Shown: one piece after another, positions 22,466 through 42,600 of the stretch
How the letters are laid out: each line of letters begins with the position of its first letter
How positions within the stretch are numbered: position 1 is the stretch's first letter
DNA from: Selaginella moellendorffii
Lineage: Eukaryota > Plantae > Lycopodiophyta
NCBI RefSeq assembly: GCF_000143415.4
Contig: NW_003314287.1
Location: 1,447,514 to 1,511,513 of the forward strand
Length of the DNA stretch: 64,000 nucleotides
Direction: 5' to 3'
Notes under the pieces: generated by a model
The model's database searches: none
The model's input: only the letters and a program-made list of their open reading frames with translations
What the model was told of the DNA's origin: nothing
Position numbers and translations under genes: made by a program

Positions 22466-23736
22466 ATGGCACCTCCAGCGCTGAGGCTGCCGCGCCATTC
22501 CTCCGGCGACGACACCAAATGCAGGCCCGCGCTGCTGCTCATCGCGGTCTCGGCATGCGCCGCCATCGCGACTTACTTCGCGCTGTCGCCACTCTTCCAA
22601 CCGGATCAGGGCGCGATCTCGTCGGATTCCAGCGACGGCCGCTCCGCCAGGCACCTCGTGGCGATCCGCGAGGAGAAGGCGGCGTGCTGCCGCGGGATCG
22701 AGCACCAGGAGCTGTGGGGATCGGTGGTCCAGTGGGGGACGAGCAACAAGGTGAATTCCTCCGCCGCGTGCTGCCAGGCTTGCAAGGCCGCGCAGTGTAA
22801 TTCCTGGGTGTATTGCGGGGATCGAGTGAAATGCGGGCCAAATTTTGGAGAGGTAGTATAAAGTTGACTCCTTCCTTGTCCGAGCGTGTTGTTTGTTTTC
22901 ATTCTCTTCACAGTGCTGGCTAAAGAATCAGGAGGATCCTCTCTCCCCCGACGTCCAGGATTCTAGCAAGGACGTCTACTGGACTTCTGGGCTTGTCTAT
23001 GCGAAGAATGTGGTAAGCTCTAGCTAGATTTCGATTTGGACACTGACAGTCTTGCTAAAGTAAGATCTTCTCCTTGTTTTTGACAGGGTCTCGTGCAGCT
23101 AGAGACCGAATATGGAGCGATCAGGCTCCAGGTAAGAAGAGAAGTTTAAGTTTGAGTTTGAGCTAAGTTGAGAAACAAAACACTTCCTTCACAGCTTCTT
23201 CCAGACTGCGCTCCACTTTCAGTCGCGTTTGTGATCGAGCTCTTGAAGTTGCGGCACTGCGCAGGTTGCAACATCTACCGAGCTGAGACCCGCGGGAATT
23301 CATGGGATGAGGAAGGAAATCCCACAGCAAAGGTAAGAGTTGCACATTCTTTTCAAATTTATGCTCTATGTTTCTCATGTTTTCTTGTTTTCTTTCTTAG
23401 AACTTGAGAGGACCTCCTCATGCTATTTTACAAGGCACTCTAGAGGCCGAGGGCCTCGGCTTCAAGGAACTCCCCAGAGAAGCTTGTCCGATGATCCGCA
23501 GGGGTATGGTAGGATGGATCGAAGGAGGCCCCGATTTTTTCATCAGCCTCGCAAACCATGACGATTGGTACCCGAAACACACAGTTTTTGCCAACGTTCT
23601 TCCAGACGACCTTCCTCTAGTTGAGAAGCTCGCGAGCTTGCCAACGTCAAAGACCATCTGGAGCGGGATTGATGTCGCTGTGCTGAAGAAGCCGATCAGC
23701 TTGAAATTGGCGAGGGCGAGCGTTGCATCGTCCTGA
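22466..23736 (+). CDS. Membrane-anchored PAN/apple-like plus cyclophilin-like domain protein
   Basis: N-terminal TM segment; WGTSNKVNSSAACCQACKAAQCNSWVYCG; LETEYGAIRLQLLPDCAP; GGPDFFISLANH..W...HTVFA. Confidence 0.8.
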
Positions 23737-23773: not shown

Positions 23774-25786
23774 TCACGCTGCTGCTTCCAGATTCACGGC
23801 AGAAGTCGCAGGTTTACTTCCAAACAGGCTGGTGAATAGTTTTGTAGCCATAGGTGGTAGTACCATCGGTTCAGGAACCATGAAATTTACCAGTGGCTCA
23901 TGGACAGTGTATCTACACAAAAAATCAAAGTTTGAGATGACCAAAGTGAGAAACCAAACTCTCTCGCTTGCCTTATCTTTCGGCCTTTAGAAGCGCGACG
24001 ATCTACGTTTTTCCTTTTCTTGCTCCGGAGCTTTCGAACTGCGTCATGGTCTACACAAGGTACAAGCACAATCAGAACATTCTCACTAGAGAAAAAGCTT
24101 CTTACCGAGGCCAGTGGGATTTGAAGACTCGAGAAATTCACGTAAAAGCTGCTGATAGAACTCGGAATCATCAAGCACCTTAATTTCATTAGTCTTTGTT
24201 TCCATATCGTTTGTGTCCGTCTGGAAAAAGTTGATAAGCCTAAAAGACTGTAAAGAACGAGCAAAGATGAAAAACCTGTGTTTTCGAAGGTTCGGAGCGC
24301 ATCATTCTTGCTATGAACCGCGGCGTGTCCTTCATTGCTGCTGCTACTTGTTGTGAAATACTCTGTAAAGACGTAAAAGGCCGTGTGAATTAAAAAAATA
24401 AAAAAAAAAAGCCAGAACGTTTAAACCTGGTTGAAAGCTTTTAACTTCGATCGCGATGCCGCAGCGCCTGAAGATATTTGAGTCTTTCTGTGCCATCTAT
24501 CGACCGTACGATCTCTATACGGAATAAGCCTGCAATACATGTCTAGTGTCATCAGCTCGTAAAGCAAGAGCTCAATTACCTTGAATACGAGTTGCTTAAT
24601 CTTTGCCAAGCTGAGTCCAGGCTATCTGAGACGCTATGGATTTCCTGTTCCACGTCCGAATCTGTAACAAGATAAGTTAATCTGCTCACCGTAAAAGAAA
24701 AATAATTCGAAACCTTTTCTGTAAGCATCGAGTGCCTCCCGGTTTTGTTCCAGCAATGCCTGCAGGACCACAATTTAAGCGCTAGAAAAGCATCAACCAT
24801 CACTATACGTTTTCTAGATCCAGAAGCGAATCAAGGGTCTGCAAGGCCGCCGCTTTCAGCGTTTGTTGTGCTTCGCTTGGGCTCGACGCTTCCTCCTGTC
24901 AAGCTTCCTTTCATACCATAAAAAGAAATACGGAAAAAGAAGCGTCACCTGTGGTAGCAGATTGGATCCTGCAACTATCTTCTGCAACGCAATTCGCATA
25001 TGCAAAGCGCTGCCCCACAATTCCTGCCAGGCCATTTCTCTTGAAATCATCCCATTGTCAAAATCATGACACATACCATCTGGTTTTTCACTGCTCGGCC
25101 TTTCCGTATATCCACATCATTCTGTCCTCTCAAGCTCTTCAACATCTCTCTGAAAGGACGTAAAAGAACACCAAACGTGGTTAAAGGACGAAGGATGACG
25201 ATACGACGCACTCACTGTTCTTCTTTATTAAGATCTTCGTATTCCTTGTTGACGGCTTCAAAATCGTCATCAAGAACCTGCTCCAACATCAAAGCTCAAA
25301 AAATTGGCGTTAGAGGTGCAAAAAAACTAAATCACATTCCTTACGTTCTTTTCTACTTGTTTTTCGTCGTCGTCCTCCTCCTCACTGAAAGCTGGTTGTA
25401 GATCATCCCGATCGTGAAAATCGTCGTCACTGATCCCATCAAAAGCATCCTTTCTGCTGCTCTTGCGACCGGAATACTCCTTCCCTTCAAGTGATATATC
25501 TGGCCTCAACCGGAGCCTTCCATCCCTGAAAACGAGAGAAAAAAAAAAATGATCGTCGGAAAAAAAACTCATTGTCCTATCACTCACGATTTCGAAAAGG
25601 TTTCCACTTCATCCGGGCCATCAGAGCTTTGCTCCTGGAGCAAATGCTGCGTCTCTTGCCCGAATCCCGCCTCCTCATCTACAAACTCCAGTCACAAACA
25701 CCGCATTCTTCCAAGAATCACGTACCGTCCCAGGAATCCTCGTCCGAATCCGATGCCACGGCCTTCGCCTTCGCCTTCGCAGGCAT
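23774..25786 (-). CDS. AATF: AATF/Bfr2 (TRAUB domain) rRNA-processing protein (multi-exon)
   Basis: Acidic N-terminus; LHMRIALQK; C-terminal KKRKNVDRRASKGRKIR|YTVHEPLVNFMVP TRAUB signature. Confidence 0.85.
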
Positions 25787-25839
25787 CGCGCGATAAACCC
25801 TAACCCTAATTTTTGCAAAACAAAAAACCTGTAAGTGAA

Positions 25840-25920
25840 AGCGATTCGAACCCGCGCAAAAATAAAAGCTTGTCAGATTTCCAGTCTGATGCTCTATCCA
25901 ATTCAACCTCAACGAGATCC
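25840..25920 (-). ncRNA. tRNA-like unit A (loop GGA), internal oligo-T
   Basis: TGGATAGAGC-ATCAGA CTGGAAA TCTGA-...TTTTATTTTT...GGTTCGAATC. Confidence 0.5.
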
Positions 25921-26002
25921 CTGACACACTATGCCAGAAATCTCTAATGGTTTTTCCCCCCTCCACCATATAATTTTAAAAGATTTGATCCATGGGACAG
26001 AG

Positions 26003-26089
26003 CCACTGCCGGGTTTCGAACCTGAGAAAAAGATATACCCGCCAGATTTTCAGTCTGGTGCTCTATCCAACTAAGCCTCGGTGTGATCC
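26003..26089 (-). ncRNA. tRNA-Phe-like unit B (loop GAA), internal oligo-T
   Basis: GGCTTAGTTGGATAGAGC-ACCAGA CTGAAAA TCTGG-...TTTTT...GGTTCGAAAC; TATA-like element ~25-30 nt upstream. Confidence 0.55.
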
Positions 26090-26134
26090 TTTGTTCCCAA
26101 TCCTCCACACGTTTATAATATGGTGTGTACTCGT

Positions 26135-26216
26135 AGCTGCGATTCGAACCTGGAAAAAAGAAATGCAGGTCAGATTTTCAGTCTGATGCTCTATCCAACT
26201 CCACTCCAATGTGGCC
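26135..26216 (-). ncRNA. tRNA-Phe-like unit C (loop GAA), internal oligo-T
   Basis: AGTTGGATAGAGC-ATCAGA CTGAAAA TCTGA-...TTTTTT CCAGGTTCGAATC. Confidence 0.55.
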
Positions 26217-26309
26217 GCTTGATATTATGTTTCTGTACTCCATGTATATGTTGAAATCATTCTTTTCTTTGTACCATACAATGATTTGAAATGCACAAAC
26301 TATTGACAT

Positions 26310-26387
26310 GGTTTGAGTGAGTGAAGCTTCGGCTGAGATGTCAGACTTAAAATCTGCCAGAACCTTTTGTTTCAGGTTCAAGTCCCT
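26310..26387 (+). ncRNA. Divergent tRNA-like unit D (loop TAA), internal oligo-T
   Basis: TCAGA CTTAAAA TCTG...TTTTGTTTCAGGTTCAAGTCC. Confidence 0.4.
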
Positions 26388-27439
26388 CTCTCTCTCTCTC
26401 TTTCTCTCTTTGTGTCAGGCCTCTTTTTGACTCGAGTTCGAAACTCTTTTACAGCTATACACCTGTAAAGAATTGTCACTACTACACCTTTTGTTTGGTT
26501 ACTACCAGTTAAAGGCTGGCCCCAAGGATGTGATTTTGAGTTTTGGTCCAAAATATTGAAACATTATTAAAAAAATAGAAATTGGATGTTGTTGAAACTT
26601 GGCACCAAGAAGCAATCGTTCTCACTATTACTTCGATCTCCAAACCAGAATATCATTTCCATCCCAAAATCATTCAAATATATGCCCGCTTAATTCTGCA
26701 TTTCCCTGAATCCTGAATAGCCACACAGGGATATTTTCTGGAGAAAACGATTGACCTCGACCCGACGTTTCGATATACCACCCCGATTTTTCGGTCCCAT
26801 ATCCGATTTACTGCTAAACAATGCCACTAGGCAAGATGACATAAGCCGACTCCGATATAAATTACAGACGTATATCAGGAGTATACGGGTGGCCAGCTTT
26901 TAGGAAATAAATTCTTTTAAAAAAAACAAGAAAATAACAGGTCGTTTGCTAAGAGGTGACAACCCAATAACTGGTACAAGAGATCCAACCAGGAAGAAGA
27001 AGGCAAAGCGGCACTCTAATAAGCAAGGGGATGGATTCCCCTAAACAAAAACTAAACATAAAGATCCAATGTTCAATGCGCAGCCCATTTACAAGTTGAT
27101 ACTTGACAGTAAACTTGTGTGAGTTTGTGGAGATCTTTCTGGCTTCTGTGTCACTTTGTTCTTGGTACGACCCGAGCAAGAACCAAAGCCAGGAGTCACT
27201 TATTGATGCCATAAGCAACAACAGCAAGGAGATATTCCTTAGATAGTGGATGGAGCGTCAAGTACCTTACTTATCAGCAATCCAATCAATCAATCAATTA
27301 AGCCCTTCATATATTCAACGGGACAAAAAAGGTTAAAAAAGAAAAACATATTGTATTTTCATATAAAACTGGTTCTCATAGCTTTAGAAATTTTCCTGGC
27401 TGCTGTACAACAATGAAAAATAATAAATTCTGGAAGAGG

Positions 27440-33848: not shown

Positions 33849-34099
33849 TCGCAATCAACACATCTCTCTTCTAGTTCGAGGTGATTTTCTTTCCTGCTGT
33901 CCAAGTATTAACATATATCGCTCCAGAACATGTATGTTAGTTAGAGGTTAGACAAAGCAATGTAAGGGGTATCATCTGATAGACTAGCTAGACGCTACAT
34001 CCACACACAAAGAGAAAGAATTTGCAACTGGTTAATGTTCTCAATGCATCCTGGAATCCTGATCATCTTAAACAGGAGGTCAAATCATTTAAGGTTAGT

Positions 34100-37080
34100 G
34101 TTTGCAAAATTCTTGTTTCTGCTGATTATGACATTTTTTTAATACAATTATTGAAAATTTTATTATCAATGTCACATTTAATAGATTTTCAAATGTTAAA
34201 ATTTAACTTTGTGAGGGCCAAGTGTACGGCTACAATGCCGTATATTAATATTAGTGTAGTGGGATTTTGGTAGTCATCGGATTAATAACAATCCAGATTA
34301 TTCACTCCCGTATATAAGTTAGGGTTTTTGGGCTAATTGATATACACTTTTTCCGTATTCTCTTTCCATATTCCAAGCACTCATAACTTATACCTAAATA
34401 GTTTTATTATAAAATAAAAAAAATTAACTATAAAATATAATTTATTAAATCATAACACATATAAAAATGTAAAAAAAAAATTTTTTTAGTTAAATAGAGA
34501 ATGCTTTTTACCATATTGGCATTATAATCTCCTTTAAGAATCACTCATAGAAGCTACACACTATACAAACTCAAGCAAAAGTTGTGCTTGATATTAGGAA
34601 ACTAGCATGAGATAGGTTAAATGCTAAGGGCACTCACTAAACCCTAAGTACAAATTATATATATGTATCAAAAGAATATACTGATTTTCACATATAGTGC
34701 TCTCTATTGGGAAATTCATCTCAACACTAGTATGGAGAGATAGTATAGATAGTATATGTCCAAAGGATAATAGGATGACCACAAGGAAACACTAGTGGTA
34801 TAAGCATAGCCATAGTAAATTTATTTTCTAGCAATTTCAAGCACTCTAGAAAATAAATATTTAGCAAACAATTTTTAAATGGATCTAAGAATATATCATT
34901 GTGTTTTTTCTTGTGATATGTACTTTGTTTTCTATATTATAGAGCATTTTAGATAATGTGAAATTATACTAGGTATGTATTAGCAAAGTCTAATCATAGC
35001 TCATTTCTAGGATATCATGCTGCAACTTTCATATATCTATTCTAAAGATTGGATATGAGTAAGCAATTTTAAAAACACTTGAAATAATTAATGGATGCAA
35101 GATTTCTCAAAAAATTATGTACAAAACAAGAATAAGAAACATACATTTCCTTTTAACATTAACTAATGAACTATGTGATATTTAAATCTAAATATAACAT
35201 ATTTGATGATCATATAATTATCAATAGACACATGGGCTGATGAACTCAATACAGTGATGAAGCTCCATCCAAACTACTATCACCTTGAGCTTTAAAAAAA
35301 TTTTAAAATACAATAATATTAATAAAATAGAAAGGAAACCAATAAGGTTAGAGGCCTATTGATCTGATTTATGGCTACCTATATACCAATTAAAAATCCA
35401 TACCTTTTGTTATGAAATCACTTGCTCTTTTGTTTACTTCCAATTAAAGAATTGTCTATAGATCAATTGTTATTCAATTGTAACTACCATTTTTTTTTGT
35501 TATACAACTGTTTCACCAATATTAGCCTCAAATACACTACCAACTTTCATCTCTAGAAGATCAAACTTAGAGATACTATTGGTAAGGTATTGGAGATATG
35601 CTTCTCTTATATAAGACATTTGCAACTAAATATCCATAACACATTATAAATTTTAGGGTATTTGTTCTGAACTAGAGAATTATCTCCTTGTTCAGCATTT
35701 TTAACTCTAATCTTAGTCATTCTAAGCTCTTGCACCATTACAATAAATCCAGCTATAGTCCTTTGACAATATAGTTAATCATCTATAATTTCCTTTAGAT
35801 TGGCCCCTCCCTTTAAAAGAGCACATATGATGCAATTCATGTGCTGCAATGGGCCTCTCATCCTCTTAACTTGGGTGTGTTGCCCATGATTATGACTAAC
35901 TCGATTAATAGATTGTTTAATGAGTGTTAAATTTCTCCTTGCCAAGAGGTCTGACCAAATAGCAACAGTAGAAACATTGGAATCAAGAAGAGTCTATTTG
36001 TATCACAAGATCTTGATGTTACAAGAGATGAAATGGTTATTTGAGCATTTAATAAAACTTTAATAGAACTTTTGGTGGGATTCTAGCAATCTAAAAAGAT
36101 GTGGAGTAGAGGGGCTTATTAAATACTTTCAATATCATTCCTCCTTATTAACTTGTTAAAGAATAGATATGGCATGTTAAAAACAAATATAAACTCATTT
36201 TAAATTTTTTTTTCCCTTTTTTAGGATCTTGTGTTCCCATTCTGTTTCTTTTTCCATTTTTCAGTCAAATCCTTTATCATGGGAAAGTCAATCTAGAAAG
36301 CCCTAAAATAGCCTAGTAAATGGAAGTTTATTAAGGCTATTGCTAGAATGGTTTTCTATACATGATTTGGGCCTATAAGGATATCAAGAAAGCAATATTG
36401 ATAATTATGCCTTATTAAGCCTCCTCCCTAGGTATATGAGACAAAAGAGTAAAGGGACTAAGAGTGTAGATTAAGTTGTTCTATGTATAATAGTCTCATC
36501 AATTGGGTGCTAAACCCAAAAAATATATTATATTCAAGAGTTCTACATATTGACTTTAGACATGCAACTTACTTAATCTTTACTTCTTTAAAGATATTGT
36601 GATATTTGATATAGTTCTCACAACTTTATTAAAAAAAAGTTGGTAATCTTTATTATACTACAAAATCTAAAGGGTATGACACAGCTTTGTGAAATTAAAT
36701 GCATTAGTAAATTTATGCCTTAACCATTTGCATACTATCAAACATTGTGTAATATATTATGTATCATCCACTTTTAAAAAGATGAACTATATTTTTGCTT
36801 TTAAAAAAATTAAAAATTTAATTTAAATTGCAACTGAAATGTAGTTTTTGGAAAAGTAACTTTCAATAAATTTTTTTTATACCTTTTATATGAAATAAAA
36901 AAGTAAAATACATAATTTCATATATTATTTTATATAATACATGTATATATATTTTTATACATATAAAAGAATATTCCTGACTATTTTAAATGCTTAGTGG
37001 GGAAGGAGATTGGGGAAAAAAATGTTATTTTTGTCCATTATACTATTAGTAAAATAGTATTTTAGTGAAAGAGTTACTAT
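34100..37080. other. AT-rich, CpG-depleted DNA, probably decayed transposon sequence
   Basis: No ORFs and very few CpG; no family identified. Confidence 0.35.
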
Positions 37081-37089
37081 TGTACAAAA

Positions 37090-39664
37090 AAATAAAAAGG
37101 CTCCTATAAATAGTCATATTTGTTTATCCACAAGATATTTACCACTACTTTGATAATCATTAATTCTTTGATATAAATGTTTGTTATATATATGGTACAT
37201 AAATTGGTATATTTCATCCCACAAGAGATAAAGACTGCTTGAGATCATATAAGTCCACCAGTCATGAACACTAGCAAGTGGTCCTTTTAAAATTGTAGCA
37301 ATGGCAACTTATTACTTTGTGAAGAGATGAATTTCACAAATTTTAATTTCATCAAGATTTGGGGCATGCAAGCTATAAGGAGTTGTCTTCACTTGGTTAA
37401 TTTTGGTTAGTGTCATGGCATCTTTGTGATTCACATATGGAAGATACAGTGGGTGACATTTGTAGAGAACAAGCTTTGTTGGTTTGGTGCTTGTCTTTTG
37501 CTTGACTACCAGATAAATGTTATAACCCTTTAAGCCTAAAAGCTGATTGGAGTGGAGAATATCACTAACACCTATGCTCAATATAATAGTCATATCCTTG
37601 CTTGCTCCCACAAGTAGTGCACCACCCCCACATATTTTTGTAAACTGAAGAAGAATATACAAAAACTAAATGAACTATAAGCAAGAGGCAATGGAGGGAG
37701 GAGAGTATGCACCTTGTAATTTATAACTTTGTTGCTATGACTCCCCTATATTAAGTTGTTGTGAGGTTTTACTTCTTTTGAAAAGACCTATAGAGAACCA
37801 AAGCCCTTAAGTTCTCTTTATCATTTGATAATTAAAGGAAAAGCTTGTAGTTGCGGCAAAAGGAAAGTCTGGGTTGTGAATAAGTACTATAATGACATAT
37901 AGGAAATCACTATGGATGAGAAGTTTGAGCTTGATACACACAAGACATCACTACTCTAGGTAAATCTCTTGAAACTACTACTATTTCATGAATAATATAA
38001 ATAAGGAAGTGTGTGTATGGTGTCTATTGTGCTAGAGTGCTGCATAGTAACTATATAAATGTCTGAGTTCTTACAATATCAAAATAAAAGCATTGGTATT
38101 TGTGCTAAATTATTTCATCTTTTGTTTTAGTCTAAACTATTAACTGATGTTATGTTCACATATGATGGATTCAGTCAATGCTTCAAGGCTTTCCTTTCCT
38201 TTTTCTGCCTCCTATGCCTGGTTTTGAGCCTCTAGTACTTGTTCTTTTACTGATGGAGTTTCTTGTAAAGTTCATAAGAGAGAGAGAGAGAGAGAGCATC
38301 ACAAGTACACATAGCAGCTATTGTTGTTAATGGTTGTTTCAATGAAATAAGTTTTTTTTTTTCACTTCTATACCATGTAATTAGACTTGTAGCATATGCC
38401 ACTTACAGGCTTATCTCTTATATATAACCCACTACAAAGAGTATCCTTTTGTGATGCAAAGTATCTACAAATTCAATAAAGTTTCAAACAGTTTATCCTT
38501 TATTTTATTCCTGTGTGTAGGGAGAAGAAGAATTTGGTTTTAGGTGTAAGGGATTCTTTCAATAAGGAGATATAAATGGTGTATAAGTTTTTTTTATGGA
38601 TTCGTGGAATATAATGATTAGGCATATCAAGAATGGCTTCCTAAAGTTCTATACTATCACTATTTGCAAAGTTGACAATGCAAAGGTGTTTTTGAATGTG
38701 GACTCACATGATCACTGTATACAAGCTAGTAATCGTAAGAAGTGTGTCCAATCCTTTTATAGAATTTAGTCATAAATCTTAATAATGTCAGCAATATGCC
38801 TTAAGAGTTTAAATGAAGTACTAGAATGCATACTCCAAACTTAAGTAGGCAAAAATGAGGTTTGAAAAAATCTAAAAGAATAAAGTTTAAACTTGAAATT
38901 GAACTATGAAAACAAGAAAAAAAAATTAACAAATTCTTTTAGCTATAGGTTCTCAACCCTATAAATGGTCATATTTAATTATTCATGCACCACCCTCTGA
39001 TATAAATGTTGGTTGTGCATATTTATATTGGCATATCCATCCCACAAAAGATAGAGAGTGTGTGAAAGAATGCAAGGCCATTTGGTTATAAATGCAAGTA
39101 AATGGTCCTCTTGAAATTATAGTAATGGCAACTCATTGAAAATGAATTTTACAAATCTTAATTTCACCAAAGCTATAAATTGTAGAGTGCATGCTCTCCT
39201 CCCCCCACCACCTCTTACCTGTAGTTCTCTTGATTTTTATATATTCCTCTTCGGTCTGCAAAAATGTATGGGGTGGTGCACTGCATGTGAGAGTAAGCAA
39301 AGTTATAATTATTGTGTTGAGCATAAATGTTAGTAATGTTCTTAACTCTAATCAACTCCTGGGATCAAAAAGTTATGACTTTTATTTGGTGGTCAAGCTG
39401 AAGACAAGCACCAAGTCAACAAAGCTTGTTCTCTACAAATGTCACCCACCATATCCGCCATAAGTGAATCACAAGGATGCTATGACACTAATTGAAATTA
39501 GCCAAGTGAAGACAATTCCTTACGGCCTACATGCCCCAAATCTTTGTTGTTACAACTCCCATATTAGGTTGTTGTGAGGCTCTGCCTCTTTTTGAGATAA
39601 CTTATGGGGAACCAAAGCCCCCTAAGTTCTTTTTATCATTTGATAATCAAAGAAGAAGCTTGTG
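37090..39664. repeat. Older inverted copy of the 16.7-20.6 kb mosaic block; continues at 53050-53597
   Basis: 37730-38510 matches the reverse complement of ~16690-17400; 38510-38960 matches the reverse complement of ~20130-20570; module ORFs at 37312-37662 and 39191-39782. Confidence 0.8.
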
Positions 39665-42600
39665 TGTTTTGTGTCAGCTTGAGAAGCTCAAGGGTATATT
39701 AAGGCATGTTAAGGTAAGAAACTTAACCTACCTTAGGGCTCATAAAGAGACTAGATCTTTGTATTTTTGTACCAAATTATAATATTAGTATCAAAGGTGC
39801 AATGGCCAACCAAGCTAAACGCTAGAATTCTAATGTTGATGGTGGTGTGGATGATGGTGCTAATTGAGTTGTAGAGGTTTAGACTATTCATGATGCAAAA
39901 GGGACAAAGAAGTAGAAGTTTTTTGTGAAAAGTTATAGACAAGGTTGTCATCATTGCAATGAGCTTGGACATTATAAGGTTGATTGTGTACAGTTGAAAA
40001 ATAAATAATAGAGCAAAAAGATTGTCCAATCTTCTACTAATGGTAAGTCAGATATTAAATAGTTGCAAACTTTGCAGCGTGAGGATGATAGGGAAGACCA
40101 TTCAGATAAAAAAAAGAGGCTTTTGATCATTGTTTATCAACTTAATTATATGTGGAATAAGATGGAGCTCGAGGACACTCGTGCATCAATTTTAATGTTA
40201 GATGGCATGTTCTGTGGTGGTTTAGTGTCAATTTTACTAAATAATGGGAGTGATGACAAATTTTTTTCAGTAAAGTTTGTTGAGGAGTATGGCCTGGTGG
40301 TACGAGGTGTTCTTCCATACACAATGGAAGGTGCAACTAACTCTACTTAGCATTTCAATGCTTATGTAAAGGGGTTGGAAGTATTTGTTAGTAAAACCAC
40401 ACTTTTGGAGACTTTTTATCTCATAAATATCCATTGTGTGGATCTTATTCTTAGGATGCCATAGTTGGTGAAAGTGAATCCAGAGATAAAATGGAATATT
40501 AAGCATATCTCACTAAAGTACAATGGCATTAAAGATGTATAATTTGGAGAGGGAGCCTTTAGTTGTTATGCTCTCTACTATATTTTTTAAGTGGACTTGT
40601 CGTAATGGAAAAGCATTTTCAAGTTACTTGCTATTTATTCATGATTTAGGGGATTAAGACAGTTGTGGGGGAGAAGTAGTAATACAGGTTGTACTTGAAG
40701 AGTTTTCTAATGTTTTTCCATTTGAACTTCCTTATATGTTACCTTTATTAGGAGGTATGGAGCATAGGATTATGTTAAAGTTAGGGATATGGCCAATTTA
40801 CTAGCATCTATTTAAGTTGAGTATGAGGAGCAAAAATTTCAACAATAAGTTAAGAAGTTACTTAAGTTTAGATTTATTCAGTCAAGTAAGTTTTTATTTC
40901 GTGCTTCAATTTTGCTCATGAAAAAGAAGGACAGTTCAATATGGATATGTATTGATTATCATACCTTGAACAAAAAGACAATGAAGGATAAAATGTCGAT
41001 GTTGTATATGGATAGTATATTAGACAAGATTAGTGAAACACAAGTGTTTACCAAGATTTATTTGAGAGTGGATATCATCAAATTGCAATAAATGATGCAT
41101 CTATCTTCAAGATGGCATTCAACACAAGCTTCACGCGTTTTGAGTTTACAGTTATATTATTTGATTTGATGAAAGTACTAGCCACATTTACTCAATTGAT
41201 AATGGAGGTATTTAGGTGTTATTATCATGAGTTTGTGGAGATTTTCCTGAAGAATATTTTTGTTTTTAGCAAGAATATAGAGTATAAAATGCATTTGCAC
41301 AAGGTTCTTTTGTTAGTACGTGACAACAAACTTTATGCAAAGAAGAGCAAATGTAAGTTTGCAAAGTCAAAGGTGAAATATCTAGGCCATATTGTGATAT
41401 CTAAATGTGTCAAGACAGATCCAAAGAAGGTAGATATGGTGGAGAACTCACCTATACTGACTTTAATGATTAAGTTATACAGCTTCTTAGTTATTACTGA
41501 TGTTTCTAGCATAAATTTGCAAAGGTGGCTATTTCCTTTTACATGGTTGTTATGCAAGAATGTGCTATTTGAGTGGAAGAAGCCATATAAGGATAGTTTT
41601 GTGGCATTAAAATGGTTGTTGAGCAAGGCTTTTATATTGTTACCAGCCAGCAGAGGCTAGGAAGAATTTCCACGTACTACTAGTGGTCAGGCCAACAAAA
41701 TCTTTGTAAGGAACAGAAGTCAAGTTGTCGTTGTGCTTCCTACAACGGGTTCGCAGTATCCACAGCACCCGCTTCCATAGCACAAAACTTTACAAAGTGA
41801 TATGTGATGCGAATGGTTATGCATTGAGAAGAGTTTTCAAATGGTTGTTGAGTAAGGCTTTAGTGCTTTGTATTATTGATCTATCAAAACTTTACAAAGT
41901 GATATATAATGTGAGTGGTTATGCACCAAATGGAGTTTTCATACAAGAGGGATAACTTATTACATATGAGAGTTGAAATTTGAATCCTGTGAAACAACAC
42001 TATTCCATATATGAGTAAGAGTTACTTTCCATTGTTCATATTTTATGGATATAGCAACACTATCTTTATAGTGTTGACAGATCACAAACTTTTTGTGTAT
42101 CTTTTCATGTAGAAGGAGTTAACTACTAGGCAAGCTCGTTAGATGGTCAAACTCATGGAGTTTTGGGAGTTTTTTTATTAGGCTTTATTTGGGAAAATCA
42201 AGTATGGTGGTAAATACTTTATCTCATGTCCATTATATGACAACATTACAAACACAATCTTTTCATCATTTAAGTAAGGTGGTCAGCAAGTTTGGGAAAT
42301 TGGTTGAGCATGCTCAGGCTTGAAGTGGTTTCTTTGCAAACCTAGATAAAAGCCCCTTTCTCATTGGTGAATAGGATTCTTTTATAATAATTATATATAT
42401 TTGCCACGAGTGGATGTATTGATTACTCAAGTTTTATTCCACTACAGTTATTGTGGGGGGAAGAAGACATATAAGCTGATTAACTACAATTTTTATTAAA
42501 GGAATATAAAGGCTAATATCCTCAAGTATTATAAATCGTGCAAGCTCTGTCAATGAATAAAGGTGCTATAGGAGAAGCCTAAAGGACTTTTGCAACTTTT

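Follow-up and report, generated by a model that had tools for sequence, protein, structure and literature searches.

What are the tRNA-like units that crowd the spacer upstream of the AATF gene of the lycophyte Selaginella moellendorffii? The question arises in a 64,000-nucleotide (nt) stretch of contig NW_003314287.1 (RefSeq assembly GCF_000143415.4, positions 1,447,514 to 1,511,513 of the forward strand), here called the window, to which all copy counts refer. Between positions 25800 and 26460 it contains five related units derived from transfer RNA (tRNA): three in tandem on the minus strand (A, B and C), one inverted on the plus strand (D) and one truncated, also on the plus strand (E). 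We consider it possible, at a probability of roughly 0.4, that these are maintained RNA polymerase III (Pol III) units which would yield RNAs of ~65 nt ending in U. Inert tRNA relics are the rival that survives best.

The full units share a common order, consisting of a variable 5' part, AGTTGGATAGAGCA, an anticodon stem-loop, a T-rich stretch, the B box GGTTCRANNC and finally unrelated sequence. The core motif GGATAGAGCNNCAGACTG was found three times with no mismatch (25882-25899, 26051-26068 and 26179-26196, all on the minus strand), compared to a chance expectation of 0.54 copies with up to 3 mismatches permitted, and a repeat search returned a 65-nt family of three copies at spacings of 169 and 128 nt. 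All four anticodon loops are 7 nt long (CTGGAAA in A, CTGAAAA in B and C, CTTAAAA in D), on a stem that is a perfect 5 bp in A-C and 4 bp in D. This stem carries a compensatory double change, reading CCAGA/TCTGG in B versus TCAGA/TCTGA in A and C. The T-rich stretch measures 17-20 nt including a T4-T6 run, which is located 3-6 nt ahead of the B box in all five units; a run of at least four T occupies identical alignment columns in all copies. Exact matches to the B box GGTTCGAANC number three in the whole 64 kb on both strands, all of them in A-C, while D and E carry versions of their own. Measured against the B-box consensus GGTTCGANNCC, unit B agrees at 11 of 11 positions; units A and C agree at 10 of 11. 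In the A box, the 3' half (AGTTGG) is conserved, the 5' half differing among units. In unit E the D arm and anticodon arm are deleted; searched with a model of units A-D, it scores 18 bits (E value 0.008). Its 5' edge TGTGTCAGG recurs upstream of unit A, the two forming inverted repeat I2 of the repeat search. An earlier note on this DNA had described three tandem units with a fourth divergent from them, a D-arm/A-box segment common to A-C, 7-nt CTnnnAA loops with GGA, GAA, GAA and TAA, the stem change, the T run between anticodon arm and B box and a shared GGTTCRA B box, and every one of these is present in the sequence. What that note saw as a further T-run plus GTTCGAA fragment at ~26424-26445 is the internally deleted unit E. 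Coordinates are collected in Table 1.

Table 1. Positions of the tRNA-derived units and associated elements in the window.
Feature	Position	Strand	Description
Unit A	25831-25912	-	Anticodon-position triplet GGA; tRNA-Phe-like core; 88.8 bits with model R1
Unit A, T runs	25858-25867	-	T4 and T5
Unit A, B box	25843-25852	-	GGTTCGAATC
Unit B	26001-26081	-	Triplet GAA; most tRNA-like of all units
Unit B, T run	26027-26031	-	T5
Unit B, B box	26013-26022	-	GGTTCGAAAC
Unit C	26129-26209	-	Triplet GAA; 91.1 bits with model R1
Unit C, T run	26154-26159	-	T6
Unit C, B box	26141-26150	-	GGTTCGAATC
Unit D	26318-26396	+	Inverted, more diverged copy, divergent from C; triplet TAA; 70.2 bits with model R1
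Unit D, T run	26365-26368	+	T4
Unit D, B box	26375-26384	+	GGTTCAAGTC
Unit E	26410-26456	+	Truncated copy beyond the (CT)8 microsatellite; retains just the T run and B-box sequence below
Unit E, T run	26424-26428	+	T5
Unit E, B-box sequence	26435-26444	+	AGTTCGAAAC
T6-G-T4	25817-25827	-	16 nt downstream of unit A B box; conventional Pol III terminator for a read-through transcript
T4 after unit B	25978-25981		Conventional T run
(CT)8 microsatellite	26386-26401		Arises directly from the T-arm 3' side of unit D (GTCCCTCTCTC...)
TATAAA	26112-26117	-	25 nt upstream of CAA (26091-26093), itself 9-7 nt ahead of the tRNA-like +1 of unit B
TATACA	26243-26248	-	28 nt upstream of CAA (26219-26221), ahead of unit C
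Double telobox	25795-25809		AAACCCTAA / TTAGGGTTAGGGTT; adjoins the AATF start codon (25786-25784, minus strand) on its upstream side

The units are tRNA-derived, yet they are not functional tRNA genes. ARAGORN called no tRNA gene among them, and no match among the units reached the Rfam gathering threshold, as the earlier note had anticipated in expecting a pseudogene call or none. Below threshold, unit B scored 28.3 bits with the Rfam tRNA model (gathering score 29), the alignment placing a 14-nt insert ahead of the T arm. Unit D scored 31.2 bits with the tRNA-Sec model (gathering score 47). Unit A was matched over its D and anticodon arms alone (14.9 bits), and unit C gave no Rfam match at E values up to 10. 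Acceptor stems do not form, as had also been claimed, the best case being unit B with 4 of 7 pairs. A local T stem forms in B only, where 4 of 5 pairs are made; in A and C it is poor. The apparent acceptor strand of unit D in the tRNA-Sec alignment is an artefact of the (CT)8 repeat, which pairs spuriously with GAGTGAG.

Conservation among A-C is confined to particular parts of the unit. The 29-nt block TTGGATAGAGCA-YCAGACTGRAAATCTGR, running from the D-loop TTGG to the end of the anticodon stem, is 90-97% identical (1-3 differences), and the 10-nt B box is 90-100% identical (0-1 difference). The ~19-nt T-rich spacer between these blocks is just 53-68% identical. Positions 5' of the D loop are matched at about half, and 3' of the B box only 1 of 12 to 4 of 10 aligned positions agree. 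Over 60 nt of upstream and 40 nt of downstream flank, the units are no more similar than shuffled sequence (z -0.5 to 2.2), and local alignment of the inter-unit spacers gives p values of 0.08-0.14, in agreement with the diverged flanks reported in the earlier note. A-box or anticodon-arm sequence is missing from units D and E, and their divergence is much greater than that of A-C, which suggests that they display the likely look of unconstrained copies at this locus.

Such patchy conservation does not fit neutral decay or recent duplication, nor does it fit long-tract gene conversion, since duplication would leave alike flanks and conversion would include the insert in its tract. Because the conserved blocks flank a diverged insert and the flanks are near random, the simplest reading is that purifying selection has acted on the A-box/anticodon block, the T run and the B box, probably for at least much of the time after duplication. 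The proposed history would start with a tRNA-Phe(GAA) gene that gained a T-rich insert of ~15 nt between the anticodon arm and the T loop. Local duplication would then have produced the tandem trio, the inverted copy and the truncated copy that now lie between a cytokinin dehydrogenase (CKX) gene and AATF. Of these copies, A-C would have selectively retained the D loop together with the 3' half of the A box, the whole anticodon hairpin, the T5-T6 run and the B box.

The promoter elements are consistent with this proposal. Read from the sequence, near-consensus A and B boxes stand at a start-to-start distance of ~58-59 nt, a workable distance for a type-2 Pol III promoter. Plant tRNA genes carry upstream AT-rich or TATA elements and CAA motifs (PMC13578239), and the TATA-like elements that the earlier note had placed ~25-30 nt upstream of B and C are indeed found 25 and 28 nt from CAA motifs, which themselves lie 7-9 nt before the tRNA-like +1. 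It is proposed that TFIIIC would bind the A and B boxes and that TFIIIB would be positioned on the TATA/CAA region upstream of B and C. Transcription by Pol III would presumably begin ~7-9 nt ahead of the tRNA-like +1 and end mainly at the oligo-T, giving a product of ~62-67 nt with an oligo-U end, in which the tRNA-Phe anticodon hairpin would be the sole stable element. The B box would thus act from just past the terminator, as it does in yeast SNR6. The RNA, or the factors bound to the units, may then have a role at the AATF promoter.

A stronger version of this proposal, which the earlier note had put forward, is doubtful but deserves attention. Units A-C, or at least B and C, would be dedicated Pol III genes with a terminator between A and B boxes, and the sole role of the B box would be that of a downstream promoter element. 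A ~65-nt RNA resembling the 5' half of tRNA-Phe (leader, D-loop region, anticodon hairpin and oligo-U) would then be encoded in the genome itself, with no tRNA cleavage involved. By analogy, such a gene is mechanically sound, with SNR6 as the precedent for a terminator before the B box. It also agrees with the conservation pattern, as the acceptor strands and T stem would be dispensable. The T-run contexts of B and C and a helix spanning the T run may speak for a different end point.

These and several further observations count against Pol III units with a short U-ended product. The T run of B is followed by CT and that of C by CC, and contexts of this type weaken termination and favour read-through in yeast (PMC4758252). 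A 4-bp helix that encloses the T run and the B box can be drawn as AAGC/GCTT in A, CGGG/CCCG in B and CTGC/GCAG in C. It was picked out post hoc, and in B both strands lie one nucleotide out of register. The helix covaries and, if real, implies an RNA that extends past the T run, as it would be pointless were transcription to stop there. The predicted unit RNAs show no stability in excess of dinucleotide shuffles (z -0.05 to +1.1). Unit A has no TATA or CAA at a matching distance upstream. The conservation signal is carried by three informative copies (A-C), and the block limits were set after viewing the alignment, rendering the Fisher tests optimistic; these limits nonetheless coincide with parts predefined by tRNA anatomy.

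The earlier note had set the units apart from random pseudogenes. The restriction of conservation to the A-box/anticodon block and the B box supports this distinction, whereas inert relics persist as a rival that we regard as unlikely but far from negligible. A tRNA-Phe gene would have been killed by the T-rich insertion and amplified locally, and the block conservation would reflect either short-tract conversion seeded in the most alike stretches or fast turnover of the flanks by insertion and deletion. This account draws on the failure of every tRNA caller to accept a unit, the loss of acceptor and T stems, the visible decay of D and E and the lack of excess folding stability; furthermore, clustered, silent or degenerate tRNA genes are described as common in plants. 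It is harder to reconcile with an insert so much more diverged than the blocks on either side of it, given that conversion tracts would not skip 19 nt, or with flanks indistinguishable from shuffles. The compensatory double change in the anticodon stem and the retention of the T run in all copies likewise argue against simple decay.

The genomic setting bears on a further explanation, in which the RNA is irrelevant. The neighbouring gene is an AATF/Che-1 homologue, as the earlier note had stated: it runs from 25786 on the minus strand, and its exon open reading frames (ORFs) match the Pfam domains AATF-Che1 and TRAUB. A word search with an AATF exon ORF for orthologous loci returned no candidates. 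The CKX gene lies at ~27.4-29.4 kb on the minus strand, and together with the telobox, which is of plant type, it marks the window as plant and not human DNA. The 1.2-kb spacer that separates the CKX 3' end from the AATF start is largely occupied by the cluster, and the orientation of A-C is that of both genes. The units could be sites bound by TFIIIC only, similar to extra-TFIIIC (ETC) sites, or boundary elements similar to tRNA genes, lying between the AATF promoter and the 3' end of CKX. The conserved A-box and B-box sequences are in keeping with this, as is the presence, between two co-oriented genes, of several copies located 40-430 nt ahead of the AATF start codon with its teloboxes, and TFIIIC sites act as barriers and insulators in yeast (Simms et al.). 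However, it is the anticodon hairpin that is best conserved, including its loop and the compensatory stem change, and TFIIIC binding does not need a hairpin; the 5' half of the A box, moreover, varies between units. We consider boundary function without an RNA product improbable.

No more credence can be given to a longer structured tRNA-like RNA of ~90-115 nt, which would arise if Pol III read through the weak T5-CT and T6-CC signals. The helix described above would here be a T-stem-like element of 4-5 bp closing a 24-nt loop that contains the U-rich tract and the T-loop sequence. It occurs within the unit in all three of A-C with differing sequences, and shuffles yield a helix in all three at a frequency of ~1e-4 to 1e-3. 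The yeast data on C or CT after a T run and the conventional T runs beyond A and B point the same way. The post hoc origin of the helix and its shifted register in B weaken this case, as do minimum-free-energy folds, which miss the helix in A and B and show no stability above shuffles. In addition, the helix is absent from D, and none of the units has an acceptor stem.

It is similarly hard to credit that the units belong to a dispersed tRNA-derived repeat family, be it the head of a short interspersed nuclear element (SINE), a terminal-repeat retrotransposon in miniature (TRIM) or a passenger of a long interspersed nuclear element (LINE), with copies that landed together by chance. Alike cores in unrelated flanks are what independent insertions would give. 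However, a search of the 64-kb window with model R1 and filters off found no copy outside the cluster; the B box would be missing from a Pol III transcript that stops at the T run, so that retro-copies could not propagate; and three same-strand insertions 128-169 nt apart would require targeting. The units resemble tRNA-derived SINEs in having a tRNA-related head with A and B boxes and a lost cloverleaf. They differ in that they have neither body nor tail, homology ending directly after the B box, and in having oligo-T between the boxes. A SINE would comprise head, body, tail and target-site duplications, and no flanking direct repeats were found in the repeat search, which could miss short ones. 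A SINE head does not fit the sequence of the window. The earlier note had named dispersed SINE heads with target-site duplications and tails as the finding that would overturn its proposal, and within the window neither tails nor further copies are seen. Remnants of backward LINE or passenger insertions at the TTCGA motif do not fit either, as the B boxes are intact and have the T run on their 5' side, which is at odds with insertion inside that motif.

The same genome harbours Helenus-1_SMo, a tRNA-carrying TRIM retrotransposon (Kojima 2024; PMC10886601), which likewise offers a short tRNA-like Pol III cassette that can repeat. Its 120-bp long terminal repeat (LTR) and 85-bp internal part contrast with unit spacings of 128-169 nt, and its tRNA-like sequence is different, including the anticodon-arm region (PMC10886601). 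The units show no match to the published LTR, and a 24-nt Helenus core gave no match in the window at up to 3 mismatches. No shared flanks, TG...CA ends or spacer resembling a primer-binding site are evident around the units. Helenus-1_SMo solo LTRs and a tandem LTR-internal-LTR array were rejected, the LTR sequence being different and the array period expected to be 205 bp.

Other candidates can be dismissed more briefly. Circularly permuted tRNA genes were rejected because joining the 3' part of C to the 5' part of B, or the 3' part of B to the 5' part of A, forms no acceptor or T stems; T-stem-like pairing was found within units only, and none between neighbouring units. A nuclear copy of plastid trnL-trnF is at odds with the anticodon stems, which are of the cytosolic tRNA-Phe type, and with the mutual paralogy of the units. 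A non-canonical tRNA intron in the T arm was set aside since no bulge-helix-bulge is seen and there is no acceptor stem. Deleting the T-rich piece would yield 5-bp T stems in A (AAGCG/CGCTT) and C (CTGCG/CGCAG). The insert ends of B, C and D (26021-26040, 26150-26165 and 26361-26376) resemble 3' splice sites, with a pyrimidine tract followed by CAG|G, and the insert of B starts with G|GTATAT; unit A lacks the AG. Spliceosomal 3' splice sites were discarded given this absence in A and an intron of ~17 nt that would be far too short.

Some features of the surroundings are recorded here as observations in their own right. An 83-codon ORF (25718-25969, minus strand) runs from upstream of unit A through the unit and in frame into the AATF start codon, and is taken for a chance occurrence. 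Converging on the AATF 3' end, a plus-strand gene at 22466-23736 combines an N-terminal PAN domain exon with a cyclophilin-like C-terminal exon (weak Pfam match). Positions 34000-42000 form an AT-rich island (GC 0.29-0.34), followed by strong positive GC skew at 40-54 kb.

In the literature searched, we found no eukaryotic genome that encodes a tRNA-half-like small RNA as its own gene and no plant Pol III gene with a B box working from behind the terminator. If the units are transcribed as predicted, they would provide both, and tRNA-fragment biology would gain a genetically separable source to knock out. Should they bind TFIIIC only, they would represent a candidate plant insulator at the promoter of a ribosome-biogenesis gene. 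If they are inert, the locus is one more decayed tRNA cluster and mainly a matter of annotation.

Yeast and plant cytosolic tRNA-Phe carry the anticodon stems CCAGA/UCUGG and UCAGA/UCUGA, with G at position 37. The units share with tRNA-Phe(GAA) the Phe-type D loop and anticodon arm, the stem YCAGA/TCTGR and the A and B boxes, as well as, in B and C, the anticodon GAA. They differ from it in the 14-15-nt T-rich insert before the T loop, in the missing acceptor and T stems and in having A rather than G at position 37. When metagenome contigs were searched with the core motif, exact matches to GGATAGAGCNYCAGACTNNAAATCTG were obtained, all of them in ordinary bacterial or phage tRNAs of 69-76 nt (Cys, Ser, Trp and one Phe-like) inside tRNA arrays. 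At the position of the T-rich insert these tRNAs show a gap of 11-12 columns in the model alignment, and their likeness to the units is that of generic tRNA sequence, not of a common family. One metagenome sequence (contig L005, 394-462) is tRNA-Phe(GAA)-like and shares with unit B a stretch of 26 identical nt across the D loop and anticodon arm; it was not called by ARAGORN, though adjacent tRNAs were.

A close counterpart is yeast SNR6, which has a TATA element at -30 and a B box behind its terminator (PMC13475603). The units, known here from their sequence, differ from SNR6 in that the part presumed to be transcribed is tRNA-derived and not U6. Their B box lies 3-6 nt past the T run, whereas that of SNR6 is located much further away, >100 bp downstream of the terminator. 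Units B and C nevertheless present the elements in the SNR6 order, namely TATA-like element, start region, A box, oligo-T and B box, and unit A follows the same order without the TATA.

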